A DNA stretch of 64,000 nt, from sequence record NC_070650.1, one strand, 5' to 3'. The position numbers and the translations under genes were made by a program. This document shows, one piece after another, positions 3,335-63,851 of the stretch. The notes under the pieces were generated by a model. It ran no database searches, had not been told where the DNA came from, and saw only the letters and a program-made list of their open reading frames with translations. Position 1 is the stretch's first letter. Each line of letters begins with the position of its first letter.

Positions 3335-5401
3335 ATGGTAGAGTATATCCATAATGAGTTAACTGTTGAAAACCTGGGCGGTATATCCAGTCTTCAGGTT
3401 TTTCCAGGGAATAACTCAAGTCCGCGTGAACAAATGGCTACCAGCCAAATAGGTCAATCATTGCTCCCGTATGGTTGCGCAGAGCGGTTTCTACAGACGG
3501 GTGACGAATTTCAGTATGGGACATGTACTTTCAATGTTAGTATTCCGGTAGATGCCGAAATTATTGATGTCGTGCATAAGGTTAATACTGCCGTCCATCA
3601 CGGTAAAATCAAAGTCAATCCGGTGATGTCCGTTATTTGGCGCGATATCGATAAAGTGTCTGTATTCGGTGTAACTCATATTGAGCGATTTCATGCCGCA
3701 CATCAGGCTTTCGGTATTCGCTATAAAGAACACAAAACCAACATGGCTAAAATTCGACCTGGTATGGGGGTCGAACGTGGTACGGTACTGATGCATTCCC
3801 CAGGCATTTCTGAGACCGGGGCCTATGCATATAGTGTCAACGCTAACGTGGCGTTCCTATCGGTCCCAGGGGTGGATAACGATGGGATTATCATGGGAAG
3901 TCAGCTCATCCATGATTTTACCGCAACTGGGATTGTTAGCCTCAATGCGAAATGGGGGTCTGATAAGTATCCATTGAACCTGTATGGCACAAAGGACTAT
4001 TATCAACCGTTCCCTAACATTGGGGATAAAATCCGACCAGATGGACTGGTCATGGCGTTTCGAGAGTACGACCTCTTTAGCGCCGTTGTTGATATGACCC
4101 CTGAAGCTTTAATGGAAGTTGATTATACTTGGGATACCTGTTATTACGGTAAACCAAATGGCGAGGTTCTGGATATCACGGTGCTGCATCAAAACACCCG
4201 CCCCGAAATCACCCCAACGGGAATGTCCGAACAAGCCAGAATGTATTTCAACGAATCCCAGCGGTATTATGGCCAGTTAAGGAACACTTATAATGAATTA
4301 CGTCGCAAGTATCGTAACCTTACACTGACGCCAGCGCTGCAAAATCTGCTCGTTCGTGCAGAAGCAGAAAACCCGGAGCAGCAAAGCAACGTTCAGAAAA
4401 CAATGCATAAAGACTCATTGGATGATTGGCACGTGTATCTCACGTTTGCCTATGACGTCGTCCCGTCGATCGGTTCAAAGCTCACAGACCACCATGGGGG
4501 TAAAGGTGTTATTGTCGGTATCTGGGACGAGCAAGACATGCCTATTGATGAGTGGGGTACCCGGGCTGGATTAATCATGGACCCTGAATCCACCATTAAC
4601 CGCATGAACCTAGGCCGTATCTATGAGCACGGTACAAATTGGTATTCGGCCAGAATAATTAACCGGTTGCTATATCTGCGCGAAACTCGCCCCGATACAT
4701 TCTATCAGGATGCATGGGATGAATTGATGCGGTATTACAAAACAGTATCCATTAGACATTATAGACTAATGGAACACCACTATCGTAACGATAAAGACAT
4801 TATCAATCATGTCAACTATGTCATGCAGTTCCGTGATGGTATTCATCTTCACATGCCACCAGATCGTGAAGATGCGGGCTATCCGTCTTATTGCAATCTT
4901 AAAGAAACCTATCCTGAGTTCAAAGCAGGGCCGGTTGAATATAGGACTCGCAAAGGTCGTTGGATTACTACCAAGAAACCCGTTAAGATTGCTAGCATGG
5001 CAATCATTCTCTTAGAGAAAACCGGGGAAGATTGGTCCGCAGTATCCACACCAAAAATGCAGCATTACGGTATCCCGGCGATGGTCACGAACGATGATAA
5101 GTATTCCACCCCCGGTCGTGAGCAGGCGGTTAAATTACCAGGCGAAGCTGAAACTCGGTTGCTTGGTTCTACGGTTGGTGGTGACGTGACGGCAGACCTG
5201 GTCGATCTCCCGAATATTCCTGGAGGACAAAAACAAATTGCGAAGACATTGTTGCTGGCGGAAAACCCATCCGATGTCGGGGATATCTTGAATAAAGAAC
5301 AATTCCCCGATGGTTCCAATAGGGCACTCCAATTGAACAAACATGTTCTGCTTTGTTCCGGTATCACGTTTGCTTCTGAAGGTGACTCATGCGACAAATA
5401 A
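3335..5401 (+). CDS. rpoB: Non-virion RNA polymerase beta subunit, C-terminal part (phiKZ gp71/73-like)
   Basis: Beta motifs NSSPREQM, NANVAFLS..G..NDGII, GSKLTDHHGGKGVI, MDPESTINRMNLG and GEAETR. Confidence 0.9.
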   Translation: MVEYIHNELTVENLGGISSLQVFPGNNSSPREQMATSQIGQSLLPYGCAERFLQTGDEFQYGTCTFNVSIPVDAEIIDVVHKVNTAVHHGKIKVNPVMSVIWRDIDKVSVFGVTHIERFHAAHQAFGIRYKEHKTNMAKIRPGMGVERGTVLMHSPGISETGAYAYSVNANVAFLSVPGVDNDGIIMGSQLIHDFTATGIVSLNAKWGSDKYPLNLYGTKDYYQPFPNIGDKIRPDGLVMAFREYDLFSAVVDMTPEALMEVDYTWDTCYYGKPNGEVLDITVLHQNTRPEITPTGMSEQARMYFNESQRYYGQLRNTYNELRRKYRNLTLTPALQNLLVRAEAENPEQQSNVQKTMHKDSLDDWHVYLTFAYDVVPSIGSKLTDHHGGKGVIVGIWDEQDMPIDEWGTRAGLIMDPESTINRMNLGRIYEHGTNWYSARIINRLLYLRETRPDTFYQDAWDELMRYYKTVSIRHYRLMEHHYRNDKDIINHVNYVMQFRDGIHLHMPPDREDAGYPSYCNLKETYPEFKAGPVEYRTRKGRWITTKKPVKIASMAIILLEKTGEDWSAVSTPKMQHYGIPAMVTNDDKYSTPGREQAVKLPGEAETRLLGSTVGGDVTADLVDLPNIPGGQKQIAKTLLLAENPSDVGDILNKEQFPDGSNRALQLNKHVLLCSGITFASEGDSCDK

Positions 5402-31400: not shown

Positions 31401-32693
31401 ATGACTGGGTTGGTGAACACCCCGCAATCAGAATTACCGAATTCCCCGACGTCGTATGCCGAAGTTCATCAGATGGTGACTGAACTCGCGCACCAACAAA
31501 ACGACATTAGCAAAAAAGACCACCAGGTACAAGAACACACTCAGGTCGTTGACGAGCTTCGCAATACTGGCGACATGATATCCGCACTGGGGGCTATCGT
31601 TAAATACAATATTGATGGTAAGCCAATGTCGCCGTTCCAGTCTTCACTGATGAAAAATGCCTTATGGCATAGTGGGAGCATCAGTCAAGAAGCGTATAAC
31701 AGCGATACCGTCATCTCTATGGAGTCCTTACGCAAAATCCTGGCCGACATATGGGTTGCAATTAAAAACAGCCTAAAACGTCTTTTAGAGCGTTTAATTG
31801 ACTTCTTAACGACCTACTACGGAATGCTAAATACCGTAGAAGATTTGGCTTTGAAATTAAAAGCCATACTCAAAGAAAATAATTGGCAAACCGTAACGGT
31901 AACCTCGTTTCCATCTAGCAATGCACGCAAAATTGCCGTTGGTGGAAAACTGAAGTCAACCTGGGTGGAAGACGTCGCCAGAACATTGACGGTATTAGCG
32001 GACTCGGACAAAAATGTCATTGATGCAATCGGTGACTTTAATCTTCGCGCTACCGACCAGGTAATTAAAACATTAAAAACGGATAAACTTCCCGATTTCA
32101 ATTGGGGTGTGTTATCCGGCACAATCGGCACCCTGCGGCGGACTATGGCTGCCACCGTAGCACGATACGGCGTGACGTCATACACCAAACCTTTTGGGGT
32201 TGAAACCTATTACTGTAGTGGCGTATTACCTGGCGAATGGCAGTTGGGTTGTAAACAAATTCCGATTCAAAACGCCAATAGTCAGCACGAGGCTGCGCGA
32301 GCAATCATTGAAGGCATGGGCGATCAGTATTTCGTCATCCTGTCTAAAGAACAAACGGGGCCTGATGCTTTGCCATTACCTTCCTTAAATGTCATTGAAT
32401 CTGCATGCGATGATATCATCGAGGTAGTCACTGTGTTGAAAGATTCTACTCGCAAACTGGATGTAGATCTCAACGACGCCTTGAAAAAATCCATTGATAC
32501 AATCGATGGGTTGATGCATCGCATTCAGGGAAGTACCGAAATCAAAGATCGGGAAGCGGTGGACTTCGTCATGAGGGCGACTCAAATATCCAGTAAACTT
32601 AGTCGTCCCTATTTGCAAGTGCTGGGGAATATCCTGCCCGCATACACTCGGGCTTTATTACAATGCGTTCTGATCTATCGTGATGGGGCATAA
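31401..32693 (+). CDS. Internal head protein, phiKZ gp93-97 family
   Basis: ISMESLRKILADIWVAIKNSLK matches the cleavage-site-plus-helix pattern of its two upstream paralogues. Confidence 0.65.
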   Translation: MTGLVNTPQSELPNSPTSYAEVHQMVTELAHQQNDISKKDHQVQEHTQVVDELRNTGDMISALGAIVKYNIDGKPMSPFQSSLMKNALWHSGSISQEAYNSDTVISMESLRKILADIWVAIKNSLKRLLERLIDFLTTYYGMLNTVEDLALKLKAILKENNWQTVTVTSFPSSNARKIAVGGKLKSTWVEDVARTLTVLADSDKNVIDAIGDFNLRATDQVIKTLKTDKLPDFNWGVLSGTIGTLRRTMAATVARYGVTSYTKPFGVETYYCSGVLPGEWQLGCKQIPIQNANSQHEAARAIIEGMGDQYFVILSKEQTGPDALPLPSLNVIESACDDIIEVVTVLKDSTRKLDVDLNDALKKSIDTIDGLMHRIQGSTEIKDREAVDFVMRATQISSKLSRPYLQVLGNILPAYTRALLQCVLIYRDGA

Positions 32694-32729
32694 ACTCAAT
32701 GAGGGAGGCTAATGGCCTCCCTTTTATGC
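32688..32729 (+). terminator. Terminator-like hairpin repeat
   Basis: GCATAA...GGGAGGC-TAATG-GCCTCCC-TTTTATGC. Confidence 0.75.
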
Positions 32730-32829
32730 TGAATATAAAAAAATACTATTTAGGATTACAATTTGAGTACACTTGGGGATGAAACATAAAAGACCTAAGG
32801 AAACGTTCCGTGCGAAGCACTCCACGTTA

Positions 32830-32990
32830 CTATCACTAATTAAAAAGATAAAATAAATATACTTAGTAAGAAAGAAAAAAGATCTTAGATTTGGGGGTTT
32901 GGGGGAGGGGTAGGAGGAGCGAAGCTCCTCCGTAGGGGAGGGTCGTAAAACATGATCGTGTGGGGAAGGGAAGTAAACCCTTCCCAAATA
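32830..32990. other. Non-coding A-rich tract followed by G-run cluster and two hairpins (candidate origin or packaging signal)
   Basis: A-rich 32838-32880. G-runs at 32893-97, 32901-05, 32907-10, 32935-38 and 32940-42. Hairpins GGAGGAGC-GAA-GCTCCTCC (32913-32931) and GGGAAGGG-AAGTAAA-CCCTTCCC (32963-32985). The function is inferred. Confidence 0.5.
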
Positions 32991-33050
32991 TGCTGATTAA
33001 TCGTTATTCAGAATTATCGTGTGTTTAACTCTACTAAGAGGTTTACTATT

Positions 33051-33488
33051 ATGAAACATTCTATTGTCCCTACACAAGCACCTAAATTCAGTATGATGGT
33101 AGGTTCCAGATCGTTGGAGACGGGTGTCAAGCTCACCTTAGAAGGTAATGGTCGCATTGATTTCTCACCGGTAATGTCCCAAGTGGTTGCGCCGAACAAT
33201 GCACTGCAATCGACCGTATATTGGTCAGAGCGCGAACCATCAACCTACTTTCTTAGTCTAGGCCAATATTCGTGTACGCCGTGTGGAATCATCAAATTCC
33301 ATGAGGGGGATGTTGAAGAACCTAATGGAACGACGATGGAGTCCTTACTCCATGTTGTTGAACATCGACTCGAGTACCATCAATCCGGCAAATACCCCTG
33401 TAAGGAAAATGCAGCGGCATTGAGTGCCGTACGGGCCGCTTTGGTCGCGTTACATCATCGTAGCGAAAAACAAGGAAAAGTATCATGA
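33051..33488 (+). CDS. tad1: Tad1-like anti-defence sponge protein (anti-Thoeris/anti-CBASS) with N-terminal extension
   Basis: The C-terminal half IKFHEG...NG....SLLHVVEHRLEYHQSGKYPCKENAAALSAVRAALVALHHR aligns by eye with the Tad1 core as I recall it (IKFQKG...HG...[40 protein letters not shown]). GAGG RBS before ATG 33051. Confidence 0.75.
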   Translation: MKHSIVPTQAPKFSMMVGSRSLETGVKLTLEGNGRIDFSPVMSQVVAPNNALQSTVYWSEREPSTYFLSLGQYSCTPCGIIKFHEGDVEEPNGTTMESLLHVVEHRLEYHQSGKYPCKENAAALSAVRAALVALHHRSEKQGKVS

Positions 33489-34348
33489 TTCAAGTTGTAT
33501 CTGCCTTTCCCGGCTGCGGGAAGAGTTGGTTTCATCGACAGTTTACTGATGTTCTGGATAGTGACTCCAGCGCTTTTGATAAATCGGCATTCCCACAAAA
33601 CTATATCTGCCATATCCGCAATACGATGGTACGAGATAAATGTATCTTCGTTAGCAGCCACGGTATGGTCAGGACTGCCATGATTGATTCTGGAATAGAA
33701 TATATCCTGGTTTATCCCAGCCACGATATCAAAGAGGAGTTCCTCGAACGGTATCGCAAGCGTGGCAGCGAACCTCAATTTATTGAATTGTTGGATAAGA
33801 ACTGGGATGGTTGGATTGGGGAATGTCAGGGGCAGCAAGGCTGCGTGCACGTGGTATTGCAATCAGGCCAATATCTCGCGGACGTCATTGAGTACGACCC
33901 ACTTTATCGTCGCTTCACAATTAAAGAAGATGCGACTACGTTTACCCCACAGCCGCACAAACATAAAACGGAATACATTGCCGTAGACTTCGACGGGACA
34001 ATTGTAACCAATGATTGGCCTGAGGTTGGTAAAGATACGGGTGCAATTGCGGTGCTGAGGGATTTACTTAGCGCGGGCTGTAAGTTAATCTTACATACGG
34101 TCAGGGAAGGGAAAGAGCTTAATGAAGCATTAGCTTATTGCGCCAAACATGGAATCGATTTTATCGGAGTTAATGAGAATCGTGAGTTTCCTCCCGGCGG
34201 CACCATAACAGATAAACCTTATGCGGACGTATATATCGATGACCGGGCGATGGGGTGTCCGCTTACTCACAATCCACTCACACATAAAGAACCTTATGTA
34301 GATTGGTTTGCGATTAGAAAACAACTGGAGAAACGAGGAGTACTATAA
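33485..34348 (+). CDS. P-loop NTPase/kinase-like domain fused to a HAD-family phosphatase domain
   Basis: N-terminal Walker A AFPGCGKS. C-terminal HAD motif I DFDGT, motif II LHTVR and motif III/IV KPYADVYIDDR. ATGA overlap with the Tad1-like gene. Confidence 0.8.
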   Translation: MIQVVSAFPGCGKSWFHRQFTDVLDSDSSAFDKSAFPQNYICHIRNTMVRDKCIFVSSHGMVRTAMIDSGIEYILVYPSHDIKEEFLERYRKRGSEPQFIELLDKNWDGWIGECQGQQGCVHVVLQSGQYLADVIEYDPLYRRFTIKEDATTFTPQPHKHKTEYIAVDFDGTIVTNDWPEVGKDTGAIAVLRDLLSAGCKLILHTVREGKELNEALAYCAKHGIDFIGVNENREFPPGGTITDKPYADVYIDDRAMGCPLTHNPLTHKEPYVDWFAIRKQLEKRGVL

Positions 34349-35892
34349 TGCCGAGTATCGGACTTAACCTCCCTGAGGGGTATGAGTTAATCTCACGCCC
34401 TGTTGCTCAGGGTATTGCTCAGCGGGTGATATCACATCTGGGAATTCAAGATAAAGTCAGTATCCTGTTTCCTGGCGATGCTGAGGTAGCGGCTCAGGCC
34501 GGCAGTACATTGGGGGAACAGAAGGAAGGGGGTCCGAATACACGCTTTGCCAGTACTCAAAGACTTCAAGTCAGCATGAATGAACAGGTTCTGGAGGGGG
34601 AGGTTTTAGCAACCCCAACTTGGCAAGTTAACCAACCCCCCATTTTCTCCGACCCTAAACTAGGCATCGCCATGAAACCTATCTACCATTTGGTGGAAGG
34701 GGTATTGTCTTTTACTTATCGTGCCGCTGACCAGACCAGTGCAGAACAATGGAAAAATAGACTGTTACGATATATTTCCCAAAACCGCGCTGAAATGTAC
34801 CATGAAATTATTTATGCGTATACCATCCCAGGCCAGTTCATTACCATCTTGGCTGAAATTCACAAGTTGCGAGAACAAGTCGCACCGTATGGCGACACCG
34901 TCATTGAATATCTGCGCAACCATTTCAGTGATAGGGTGGATGTTAAAACCAACATGGCGGGTAAGGGTGCTGCGTTTGCCGTGGATGAAATTCAGAAGGG
35001 CGTCATCGGTTGGTTTGATTGGACTATCCCGCCAACCCCAGAAAAAACCAGTGAAGAAAGCACGTATACCGCTACCTTTGAGTTCCATTATCAATATCAG
35101 CAGGTTACTGGGGTACATCTGAAATACCCTATCATCGTACACCAACAGCTTTTGCCCAGTAATTTACGTCCGTTGAATTTATCCTACGAACTTAATCGCA
35201 GCTTACCGACGTATATGTCTTTAGCTAAGCAGGAATATCAGGCGGTTAAAAAGGAAACAGATGGCTATTATGCAACGCAGGAAGGTATCCGTTATCCTGA
35301 TTTTGATGAGTGGGCGCCAAATCACGTGATGGCCGATCAGATTCCATTACTGACTGTAATGTTGACTATTTCTGCGGATGACCCTCGATTTCTTTTGAAC
35401 ATCCAAGAACTATCCCATTGGAATTTTAATCCAGATATTCTCGAGTTTCTGCTGGTTGAACCTAAATGGGCAACATTAACCAAATTTACCCCAGTCTTAA
35501 TCACGCTGTATTGTGATGGCGACAAATGCGATGACCAGATCGTACAGTTGGATGCTTCCGGCGATGTACGTACAACCATCGATTTGGACTTAAGGCGCCA
35601 GTACCACATCGTGATTAGTGCGATGTCTGATTTATCGCAGTTGAATAAAAATAACACCGATCTTTTGCGACAATACCCTAAAGCCGCCATGGTTGTGCTG
35701 TATGCCTTAGAACCTCGTTTAGAATCTTGGGGTAAATTACCAGAAGTATTGGGTGATAAGCTTGTATCTCGCGTGGGTTGGTTGGAAGCAATCAACGTCA
35801 TTAAAACAACTTCCCCTATTTTCCGTACAGCAAAATACTACTCACGTTTTACGGTGGGGTCTTACATCCTGGCTACAGCGGAGAAAAAATAA
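34348..35892 (+). CDS. Virion structural protein (phiKZ gp98-like)
   Basis: 514 aa at the syntenic position; TAATG overlap with the previous gene. Confidence 0.55.
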   Translation: MPSIGLNLPEGYELISRPVAQGIAQRVISHLGIQDKVSILFPGDAEVAAQAGSTLGEQKEGGPNTRFASTQRLQVSMNEQVLEGEVLATPTWQVNQPPIFSDPKLGIAMKPIYHLVEGVLSFTYRAADQTSAEQWKNRLLRYISQNRAEMYHEIIYAYTIPGQFITILAEIHKLREQVAPYGDTVIEYLRNHFSDRVDVKTNMAGKGAAFAVDEIQKGVIGWFDWTIPPTPEKTSEESTYTATFEFHYQYQQVTGVHLKYPIIVHQQLLPSNLRPLNLSYELNRSLPTYMSLAKQEYQAVKKETDGYYATQEGIRYPDFDEWAPNHVMADQIPLLTVMLTISADDPRFLLNIQELSHWNFNPDILEFLLVEPKWATLTKFTPVLITLYCDGDKCDDQIVQLDASGDVRTTIDLDLRRQYHIVISAMSDLSQLNKNNTDLLRQYPKAAMVVLYALEPRLESWGKLPEVLGDKLVSRVGWLEAINVIKTTSPIFRTAKYYSRFTVGSYILATAEKK

Positions 35893-62654: not shown

Positions 62655-63252
62655 CTATATTCCTTATCACGTTATCGTGAAAGAGGAATGGGCATCCACA
62701 TACCGCATCGCGGCAATCGACCCAGGGAGCGATACCCTGGGTTTTACTATTATTGATATTGACCTTCGTACTGGGAAAATCATCGTAGTTTATTCGGATA
62801 CGTATGAAGCCTCACGCCAGTTGCGTTACCTCAATCCGCAGTACGTCGAATCCGTAGGTAATATGCGCGCACGGTTTGAATGCCACGAGCGTACGTTAGT
62901 CAATCTCTTCAATCAGTTTAAACCGCATAGCGTTATCGCAGAATCCGCATTCCTGAAAAAGAGGTTTCCGCATAGCTTTGAATCTTTGACCATTGGTCTT
63001 GAGATGATACGTCGTGCACTTTATCAATATAACCCAACGCTTAAGTTAAAAACAGTAGAACCTACCGCAGCGAAAAAAGTCGTTATATTAAAAGGCGATC
63101 CTTTTAATGATAAAGCATCTGTGCGTCGTGGCGTTTTAGCTTACCCTGAACTCCATTGGGAAATCGACTCATCCCAGTTAGATGAGCATGCTTTTGACTC
63201 TGTTGCTATTGGTATTTATGAAGCGTTATCCGTTATCGGAGAGTTTGTATGA
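62647..63252 (+). CDS. ruvC: RuvC-like Holliday junction resolvase
   Basis: RNase H-fold acidic motifs AIDPGSDTLG, VIAESAF and DEHAFDSVAIG. Confidence 0.8.
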   Translation: MPNYIPYHVIVKEEWASTYRIAAIDPGSDTLGFTIIDIDLRTGKIIVVYSDTYEASRQLRYLNPQYVESVGNMRARFECHERTLVNLFNQFKPHSVIAESAFLKKRFPHSFESLTIGLEMIRRALYQYNPTLKLKTVEPTAAKKVVILKGDPFNDKASVRRGVLAYPELHWEIDSSQLDEHAFDSVAIGIYEALSVIGEFV

Positions 63253-63851
63253 AGGGTAAGTATTACGTCATTGAAGGTTTGGATGGCACGGGGAAAAGCA
63301 CCCTGATTGAGAAGCTTAAAGCGGCCCATCCCGAATGGGTTTTTGTGGCTGAACCTGGAGGGACACCGATAGGGCAAATGCTGCGCGCTTTAGTGAAGGA
63401 AGGTTTGGGTGAAGAAGTAATTACTCCCATTTCCGAACTACTCATGTTCTCGGCCGCCAGGACACAACTGTTGTCTCAAATTATCGCACCTGCGTTAGCC
63501 GAAGGGAAAACAGTCATCAGCGACCGTAATTGGGTATCCACACTGATGTATCAGGGTCATGGGTTTGGTACTTCCGCGATTAATACCGTGCTGGATTTGC
63601 ATAAGCTCATCTTAAAAGACCTCCCAGTACCGACCGGTTATTTATATCTATCACTCTCTATGGAACAAAGGGCGTTGCGTTTACGTCACCGTGGGGAAGC
63701 CCCAGATCGTTTAGAATCGCGAAATAGTGATTATTATGTGCGGGTACACGCTGGATACGAAGCCTGGGCGAAAGCCAACTCCAATGTGTTTAAATTGGAC
63801 GCGTCAAAATCTTCTGATGATGTATTCACATCCGCACTAACATTCATTTAG
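63249..63851 (+). CDS. tmk: Thymidylate (dTMP) kinase
   Basis: IEGLDGTGKST, EPGGT, LMFSAAR.Q and ISDR...S...YQG. Confidence 0.92.
   Translation: MKGKYYVIEGLDGTGKSTLIEKLKAAHPEWVFVAEPGGTPIGQMLRALVKEGLGEEVITPISELLMFSAARTQLLSQIIAPALAEGKTVISDRNWVSTLMYQGHGFGTSAINTVLDLHKLILKDLPVPTGYLYLSLSMEQRALRLRHRGEAPDRLESRNSDYYVRVHAGYEAWAKANSNVFKLDASKSSDDVFTSALTFI

Follow-up and report, generated by a model that had tools for sequence, protein, structure and literature searches.

A Tad1-family gene and a kinase/phosphatase fusion gene lie side by side in the head-gene region of the jumbo phage vB_KvM-Eowyn

Why should a gene for a protein related to Tad1, a sponge for nucleotide immune signals, lie directly in front of a gene that joins a kinase to a phosphatase, and why should both stand among the head genes of a jumbo phage? 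The question arises from a stretch of 64,000 nucleotides, hereafter the window, which is 100% identical to the Klebsiella phage vB_KvM-Eowyn (LR881104/NC_070650, 265 kb), a phiKZ-like jumbo phage; window positions equal record positions minus 62000. In the genome announcement of a second species, the genus Eowynvirus is grouped with the jumbo phages that form a nucleus and have a nuclear shell protein as well as PhuZ; in Eowyn itself, PhuZ is annotated. The two open reading frames, ORF1 and ORF2, had been singled out in a sequence-only reading as a coupled sponge-plus-enzyme module and a candidate for an undescribed system. We arrive, with a probability of about one half, at a plainer explanation: a small accessory cassette of one phiKZ-like nucleus-forming lineage, in which a sponge-type ORF1 and a fused kinase/phosphatase ORF2 reside together in an island without demonstrated coupling.

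By sequence, profile and predicted fold, ORF1 is a member of the Tad1 family, as had been proposed. In phmmer searches of the PDB it matches the Tad1 entries 8kbb, 7uav, 8kbe and others with E-values of 1e-4 to 3e-4, and it matches phiKZ gp184 with an E-value of 1e-4. An exhaustive search returned 490 family representatives at E ≤ 1e-3, mostly of 100–140 residues (aa) and nearly all aligned over residues 60–141 of ORF1. All 18 invariant or near-invariant columns of a 70-sequence family alignment are retained in ORF1. A Pfam scan of ORF1 itself gave nothing significant and no match to PF24729 (Acb2_Tad1_hairpin); this family is listed in precomputed tables for three homologues 70–88% identical to ORF1, and is weak in the one examined. 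The AlphaFold2 (AF2) model of the ORF1 monomer has a predicted local distance difference test score (pLDDT) of 67 overall, of 81–94 over residues 81–140 and below 50 over residues 1–37. When this model was compared with the PDB by Foldseek, the matches with E ≤ 0.001 were Tad1 structures in 20 cases out of 20, over 111–133 aligned columns, with template modelling (TM) scores of 0.54–0.71 against the CmTad1 and CbTad1 chains (normalised by target length). ORF1 is the sole Tad1-family ORF in the scanned Eowyn sequence (242 of 265 kb, 91%), and within the same sequence ORF2 is the only member of its kinase and phosphatase families.

The ligand residues published for CbTad1, whose roles are described in bioRxiv 10.1101/2023.11.15.567273, were transferred to ORF1 by pairwise alignment. 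The equivalents of N92 and R109 are present as N120 and R137, in columns that hold Asn and Arg, respectively, each in 64/65 family members. In the comparison with L009, a 78% relative, no gene of the locus evolves faster than ORF1, whose non-synonymous divergence (dN) is 0.14 as compared with 0.03–0.10 for its neighbours; it is nevertheless under purifying selection (ratio of non-synonymous to synonymous divergence, dN/dS, 0.16). Purifying selection has preserved the core and half of the pocket, and Tad1-like binding of a nucleotide-type ligand is therefore most likely retained in ORF1, probably with a specificity unlike that of CbTad1. The disordered N-terminus carries an S/A/G-x-E tripeptide, which we take to be the phiKZ head-protease motif, in all five Eowyn-type ORF1 sequences; it ends at E23 in three of them, at E31 or E32 in the remaining pair, and is no more than a weak hint. 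Residues ~6–85, a stretch that covers most of the predicted disordered N-terminus, show a weak similarity to Big_2 Ig-like repeats.

ORF2 joins a P-loop to a haloacid dehalogenase (HAD) phosphatase, and the motifs on which this description had been based could all be located. PHROG 4182 matches aa 2–137 with an E-value of 2.4e-55, the Walker A motif AFPGCGKS lying at aa 7–14 (33503–33526) and being followed by DSDSS (33557–33571), FPQNY (33590–33604), SSH (33653–33661) and RYRKRG (33749–33766). The consensus of 16 diverse family members consists of the Walker A Lys, an Asp-x-Asp-Ser after strand 2, FPxNY, SxH and a lid-like RYxxRG; these motifs stand on invariant or nearly invariant columns, both ends being invariant only in Walker A and FPxNY. 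The invariant residues of the family (K13, D25, D27, S28, N39, Y40, H59, R89, R93 and G94) are all found in ORF2. An Asp-x-Asp after strand 2 typically marks kinases whose target is a hydroxyl group and not the phosphate of a nucleoside monophosphate (NMP), and the acceptor of the ORF2 kinase would thus be a hydroxyl. No Pfam, NCBIfam or PDB sequence match was obtained for this domain. Its structural neighbours in Foldseek are guanylate kinases, Fap7, a fungal RNA kinase and T4 Pnkp, and it superposes about equally well on guanylate kinases and on Fap7.

The kinase family, phrog_4182, comprises 246 phage records from T5-like, T4-like, SPO1-like and many jumbo phages, and its members are usually stand-alone proteins of about 140–165 aa. 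In Klebsiella phage N1M2 (L020 3276–5075) and Kosakonia phage Kc263 (L022 3501–5174) the kinase domain forms the N-terminus of a protein type of 557–599 aa, which has no recognisable partner domain and adjoins genes for RNase H and an NAD-dependent DNA ligase. Long stop-to-stop ORFs around the kinase genes of IMG/VR revealed no informative partner domains. The homologue g133 of Yersinia phage phiR1-37 (L025 1968–2432) is annotated as a 'phage structural protein' and lies two genes 5' of the major head protein gene, which suggests that members of the kinase family can be virion-associated. A fusion of a TIR domain with the kinase was pursued as a lead and dropped: P0008 (ENA, 1353-bp contig; 395 aa, TIR_2 at aa 88–175 and kinase at aa 226–365) is a near-singleton with one partial relative in 5.8 billion proteins.

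The C-terminal domain of ORF2 is matched by PHROG 1238 over aa 159–285 (E-value 2e-32). HAD motif I, DFDGT, lies at aa 168–172 (33986–34000), LHTVR at 34091–34105, KPYAD at aa 244–248 (34214–34228) and the Asp pair at aa 252–253 (DDR at 34238–34246), and the catalytic motifs I–IV are intact. Against PDB 2obb the domain gives an E-value of 3e-13, which becomes 7.6e-54 with the family profile, and a Foldseek TM-score of 0.73. The NCBIfam BT0820 model (NF046079) is matched with an E-value of 4e-24 and 85.6 bits, under its cut-off of 165, so that the domain is a relative of the BT0820 family and not an equivalog. A Pfam search of ORF2 gave nothing significant, with neither HAD_PNKP nor any kinase family at E ≤ 1. 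Two database labels of ORF2 can be set aside. The name 'phosphoheptose isomerase' comes from PHROG 1238 and is corrected here, the domain being a HAD phosphatase; the 'gp95' of the record is not phiKZ gp95, a member of the internal head protein family, and ORF2 has no phiKZ_IP match.

The AF2 model of the whole ORF2 has a pLDDT of 81. In Foldseek its best match is 2obb, then full-length T4 Pnkp, then Pnkp1, guanylate kinases, Fap7 and the fungal RNA kinase; sequence searches of the PDB returned only 2obb and 1xpj, with mammalian PNKP at an E-value of 0.7. The full-length protein is found only in Eowyn-type phages (Eowyn, KpHz_2, KpGz_1, two metagenomic clusters and L194), and it is under purifying selection in the comparison with L009 (dN/dS 0.03). 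By analogy with Pnkp at broken-strand ends, ORF2 most likely phosphorylates a hydroxyl and takes a phosphate off a different site of that substrate or of a related one; two different positions are supposed because it would be futile for kinase and phosphatase to work on one and the same group. We rank the healing of nucleic-acid ends slightly above the remodelling of nucleotide pools, and well above the direct modification of immune signals. Iyer et al. 2021 (PMC7824862) described jumbo-phage fusions of polynucleotide kinase and HAD domains as enzymes of RNA repair. An independent kinase-HAD fusion is P0050 (L011 8001–8855), composed of a domain resembling deoxynucleoside monophosphate kinases and a BT0820-type HAD. 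Its gene is situated between ThyX and NrdD/NrdG, with an RNA ligase gene (PF09414) 3.7 kb downstream.

The origin of ORF2 was revealed by a sister clade (L030/L197, L196 and the fragment L195), found by a kinase-seeded scan of IMG/VR and metagenomes. At the corresponding locus these phages have internal head proteins on the 5' side, a gp98 homologue 46–49% identical to that of Eowyn over the aligned stretches and a gp99 homologue about 49% identical. In between lie three separate consecutive genes for a Tad1-like protein (106–112 aa), a kinase (about 180–190 aa) and a HAD phosphatase (about 127 aa). The kinase is ~60–61% identical to the N domain of ORF2 and the HAD ~44% identical to its C-terminal domain; in L030 the stop codon of the kinase gene overlaps the start of the HAD gene. 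Since the sister clade encodes kinase and HAD in two neighbouring genes at this locus, ORF2 is a gene fusion, and the fusion of two neighbours is classic evidence that kinase and phosphatase work together. The Tad1-kinase-HAD gene order is older than the genus Eowynvirus. The sister-clade Tad1-like protein is recognisable by profile only (probability 92.7%, E-value 4e-7), and the 136-aa gene 5' of it in L030 is not detectably Tad1-like. More distant still is Erwinia phage pEa_SNUABM_54, with a gp98 homologue 28% identical to that of Eowyn, in which the corresponding place among the head genes is taken by a Tad1-family gene of 131 aa (L006 3630–4025; hhalign probability 94.7%). Its product has no N92 equivalent, and a tblastn search with it found only itself. 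The next gene of this phage, of 286 aa and without family match, was considered as a counterpart of ORF2 and proved unrelated, the similar size being a coincidence.

The proposal that the pair had been inserted between a head-protein block and the gp98–101 block agrees with the comparison of phiKZ-like phages. On the 5' side of the cassette are three genes of the phiKZ internal-head-protein family, and on its 3' side homologues of phiKZ gp98 and gp99, then further virion genes; phiKZ098 is known from virion mass spectrometry cited in the Moabite annotation. In OMKO1, Moabite, FLC1-1B, PhiEaH1 and Centimanus the head-protein genes continue up to the gp98 homologue, and in phage RAY the neighbours of this homologue are tail-fibre and virion genes on the opposite strand. 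In none of the six phages does a member of the ORF1, kinase or HAD families stand at the equivalent locus. As head genes and gp98 are uninterrupted in five of these phages and the families are absent from the locus in all six, the cassette is an insertion. The gp98 homologue used as an IMG/VR query found no related locus.

Within the cassette, the ORF1 stop TGA (33486–33488) overlaps the ORF2 ATG (33485–33487), and the resulting ATGA at 33485–33488, noticed in the sequence-only reading, is indeed present. Its use there as the mark of a functional module does not hold. The ORF2 stop likewise overlaps the start of the gp98 homologue (ORF3) as TAATG, and over record positions 62–104 kb 9 of 29 same-strand neighbour pairs overlap or abut; because this is so for about a third of the pairs, the overlap is uninformative on such a module.

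Whether the genes belong together can be judged better from their company elsewhere. A Tad1-family gene and a phrog_4182 kinase gene lie less than 1.5 kb apart in three unrelated genomic backgrounds, in two of them with a HAD gene. On L260 (JACCDR012491970.1, 2543–6441), a 46-kb contig that has nothing else in common with the Eowyn window, genes for Tad1, kinase, a SocA/Panacea-domain antitoxin and a BT0820-type HAD are contained within 4 kb on one strand. The Tad1 gene is here canonical, with Pfam Acb2_Tad1_hairpin above threshold, and the cluster is apparently an anti-defence island. On the unrelated 261-kb contig L050/L247, the kinase gene is 1.4 kb from that of a 351-aa protein with a complete Tad1 domain. 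This protein (L050 6811–7866, IMGVR_UViG_3300033997_000092) has its Tad1 domain at residues ~233–348, behind a 230-residue N-terminal region with no Pfam match, and may be another Tad1 of the packaged type. Company of a related kind is seen in Bacillus phage SP10 (L023 2537–3944), where the gene of an Apyc1-family hydrolase with metallo-beta-lactamase fold (PDB 7u2r, E-value 3e-12; Pfam Anti-Pycsar_Apyc1, 49.2 bits for a cut-off of 50) overlaps the downstream stand-alone kinase gene by 17 nt, an arrangement kept in SBSphiC and Goe26.

Other counts point the opposite way. A Tad1 gene lies within 5 kb in only 2/80 IMG/VR kinase loci, and neither kinase nor HAD was found near canonical Tad1 in any of 80 loci, from a scan seeded with a narrower Tad1 alignment since the broad one was too diverse as a seed. 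The kinase gene is found directly upstream of thymidylate synthase in Yaphecito, near dCTPase in Acj9 and, in other phages, near nicotinamide mononucleotide (NMN) adenylyltransferase, beside RNase H/DNA ligase or near head genes. The survey of neighbourhoods that the original proposal called for thus has a divided outcome: Tad1, kinase and HAD recur together in L030/L196 and L260, and Tad1 with kinase in L050, against no instance at the canonical Tad1 loci. It is suggestive of a kinase that is an accessory gene tending to share variable islands with counter-defence genes, and this does not by itself imply a shared mechanism.

This is the sense of the explanation that we favour. The cassette, which sits in an accessory or anti-defence island, would have been acquired between the internal-head-protein genes and the gp98–101 virion block, in the direction of the late genes. 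The most likely job of ORF1 would be the Tad1-like soaking up of nucleotide immune signals, in keeping with its partly conserved pocket. ORF2 would be a bifunctional enzyme of phospho-transfer and phospho-removal acting on nucleic-acid ends or on nucleotides. The two genes would be neighbours because accessory and counter-defence genes gather in islands, and the ATGA overlap would be ordinary operon packing. Late expression and packaging into the head would follow from the position of the cassette. A thymidylate kinase gene (window 63249–63851, record 125249–125851) is also embedded in a block of structural genes, and for this reason position is weak evidence of either.

Several observations weigh against this explanation. 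In the pocket of ORF1, F82 of CbTad1 is replaced by H110 (the column has F in 56/65 and H in 5/65 members) and R113 by Q141 (R in 61/65, Q in 0/65); only 8 residues follow the R109 column, the median of the family being 15, and the C-terminal lid over the ligand (CbTad1 116–122) is for the most part missing. The designation of ORF1 as a nucleotide-signal sponge is therefore upheld as far as Tad1 membership and the N92 and R109 equivalents go, and sponge activity is not to be assumed, because the R113 equivalent and most of the lid are absent. The sister-clade Tad1-like protein has no equivalents of N92, R109 or R113, which argues for a role other than the binding of glycocyclic ADP-ribose (gcADPR) in the lineage. 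The likeness of ORF2 to T4 Pnkp (2ia5) is weak: the Foldseek alignment spans 286 columns with an E-value of 7e-4 and a probability of 0.92, at a TM-score of 0.26 and a root-mean-square deviation of 16 Å, values that reflect a different orientation of the domains. Sequence searches gave no significant similarity of the kinase domain to any characterised kinase, nor of the phosphatase domain to that of Pnkp. A ligase that could be its partner is not annotated in record positions 1–50000 and 62001–254000, and a single-sequence phmmer search of these 242 kb (91% of Eowyn) with the L011 query found no Rnl2-type relative at E ≤ 1. Lastly, Tad1 and the kinase recur together in three unrelated backgrounds, and this may be more than co-residence in islands.

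If it is more, ORF1 and ORF2 could act on the same class of molecules, nucleotide- or NAD-derived immune signals, with selection for their co-inheritance; ORF2 would then modify or dephosphorylate signals bound by the sponge, or act on signals that the sponge cannot hold. The preserved gene order speaks for this, being kept across two clades whose virion proteins are about 47–49% identical, as does the conservation of the kinase, which at about 61% exceeds the flanking virion proteins (47–49%) and is the highest in the cassette. So do the 4-kb cluster of L260, the 1.4-kb neighbourhood of L050/L247, the overlap with an Apyc1-type cyclic-nucleotide phosphodiesterase gene in the SP10-type phages and the one TIR-kinase fusion, P0008. 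The last is a near-singleton, however, and the canonical Tad1 loci (0/80), the scarcity of Tad1 at kinase loci (2/80), the varied metabolic, replicative and head-gene surroundings of the kinase and the unrelated partner of the Tad1-like gene in pEa_SNUABM_54 all tell against a dedicated pair. A 'capture-and-detoxify' module of Tad1 and kinase/phosphatase is possible, and joint action of the two genes appears rather unlikely. A broader version, in which the phrog_4182 kinase, with or without a BT0820-type HAD, is an undescribed counter-defence enzyme that accompanies signal sponges and degraders, altering signals or repairing effector damage, the Eowyn cassette being its most compact, fused form, seems improbable.

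ORF2 might also have no connection with defence and be a nucleoside or nucleotide kinase with a 5'-nucleotidase, ORF1 being a mere neighbour. The surroundings of P0050 and of the Yaphecito and Acj9 kinases would suit such an enzyme of the nucleotide pool, relatives of the HAD domain in BFVD are named 5'-nucleotidase, guanylate kinases are among the top structural neighbours of the N domain, and the thymidylate kinase gene makes it clear that metabolic among structural genes is normal in this phage. This possibility is nonetheless unlikely: the invariant Asp-x-Asp is of the hydroxyl type, kinase and phosphatase would run a futile cycle if both worked on one mononucleotide, and genes for thymidine kinase, thymidylate kinase and thymidylate synthase are already present elsewhere in Eowyn. 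It could also be that ORF1 is mainly an inner capsid protein that has kept the Tad1 fold without the sponge function, with ORF2 perhaps as packaged cargo. ORF1 lies within the head-gene block, is labelled 'structural protein' in GenBank and contains the tripeptide in 5/5 homologues; copies without the pocket residues persist at the locus in the sister clade and in pEa_SNUABM_54, and the label and place of phiR1-37 g133 are of the same tenor. The precedent is phiKZ gp184. This Tad1 homologue belongs to the inner vertex-binding complex as a minor capsid protein and undergoes cleavage by the head protease; it has been reported both to be injected and to block Thoeris and the cyclic-oligonucleotide-based antiphage signalling system (CBASS). 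ORF1 resembles only the Tad1 domain of gp184, whose long N-terminal region it lacks, so that its packaging cannot be deduced by homology; the tripeptide is a short motif found at varying positions, the published work on Eowynvirus includes neither a virion proteome nor a transcriptome, and every near-invariant residue of the Tad1 core is retained. A chiefly structural role is thus a doubtful prospect, and we return to an accessory cassette of a sponge-type protein and an end- or nucleotide-modifying enzyme as the preferred explanation.

The features of the locus are collected in Table 1. Each of ORF1, ORF2 and ORF3 has a Shine-Dalgarno-like sequence (GAGG, AAGGA or GAGGAG) a few bases 5' of its start codon. 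The 357-bp leader is the largest same-strand intergenic gap in the region, which agrees with the earlier description of a ribosome-binding site (RBS) and a non-coding element belonging to the cassette. In the leader a GC hairpin at 32702–32722, after the preceding head gene, is followed by a T-run and is terminator-like, and a 19-nt palindrome is found around 32913–32931 within the G-rich tract. The leader is 82% identical to that of L009 over 339 nt, and RNA folding of the segment 32860–33050 gives z = -2.67; Rfam and tRNA scans of the leader found no Rfam family and no tRNA. Two other Eowyn genes are conflict-related by annotation: gp008 (record 4275–4718), a Macro-domain 'Appr-1-p processing' protein, and gp212 (record 187909–190848), a DarB-like antirestriction protein.

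Table 1 Coordinates of the cassette, its domains and its neighbours in the window
Feature	Position	Strand	Remarks
Internal head protein gene (Eowyn gp122), upstream neighbour	31401..32693	+	Pfam phiKZ_IP, E 1.2e-13; PHROG internal head protein
Leader, intergenic	32694..33050	+	Terminator-like hairpin and T-run, G-rich stretch with several hairpins, ORF1 RBS
ORF1, 145 aa, divergent Tad1-family protein (Eowyn gp123)	33051..33488	+	Record label 'structural protein'
ORF1 N-terminal extension, aa 1-37	33051..33161	+	Predicted disordered; one S/A/G-x-E tripeptide
ORF1 Tad1 fold, aa 38-141	33162..33473	+	AF2 model: four beta-strands, two helices
ORF2, 287 aa, P-loop kinase/HAD phosphatase fusion (Eowyn gp124)	33485..34348	+	Labels 'gp95' or 'phosphoheptose isomerase'
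ORF2 P-loop kinase domain, aa 1-150	33485..33934	+	PHROG 4182
ORF2 capless HAD phosphatase domain, aa 156-287	33950..34345	+	PDB 2obb, PHROG 1238
phiKZ gp98 homologue (ORF3, virion protein), downstream neighbour	34348..35892	+	PHROG 3289, E 8e-115; record label ORF098

The claim to an undescribed system is not established, jumbo-phage Tad1 (phiKZ gp184) and kinase-HAD fusions having been published already. The new elements are a trimmed line of Tad1 placed among head genes and its repeated association with a kinase family that is uncharacterised. The first adds a second, structurally trimmed line of Tad1 in the head-gene region of another chimallivirus group. The second ties an abundant kinase family to genes that neutralise immune signals, Tad1 in three backgrounds and Apyc1 in one. 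Should this association be functional, it would point to an enzymatic handling of immune signals, or of the damage they cause, that is not yet catalogued; should it not be, the locus still illustrates clearly how two genes have fused within an accessory island.

Tad1 is the only anti-defence protein so far described in jumbo phages (review PMC13282480), and ORF1 can be compared with both of its forms. With CbTad1 and CmTad1 (PDB 7uav, 8kbb–8kbh) it is homologous at a pairwise E-value of 1e-4, is predicted to share the fold, an antiparallel sheet at the N-terminus and two helices at the C-terminus, and carries K and S where the cyclic-trinucleotide site has R90 and T97. It differs in its 37-residue disordered N-terminal extension, in the H for F82, the Q for R113 and the largely missing lid, and in the place of its gene among jumbo-phage head genes. 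With phiKZ gp184 it has in common a Tad1 domain in a phiKZ-like nucleus-forming jumbo phage. However, gp184 has 230 aa with a long N-terminal capsid-anchoring region, as compared with the 145 aa of ORF1; the match (8y6v_I) spans residues 152–216 of gp184 only, the N-terminus of ORF1 has no similarity to gp184, and in phages of the phiKZ type no Tad1 gene separates the homologues of gp97 and gp98. The C-terminal domain of ORF2 matches 2obb of the BT0820 family (NF046079) with all HAD motifs present, and differs from that family in its fusion to a kinase and in its score under the equivalog cut-off. From T4 Pnkp, ORF2 is set apart by a kinase domain without significant sequence similarity to that of Pnkp, whereas the architecture is alike: both have an N-terminal P-loop kinase followed by a C-terminal capless DxDxT HAD in about 290–300 residues, and BFVD entries named 'polynucleotide kinase' align with ORF2 over its full length.

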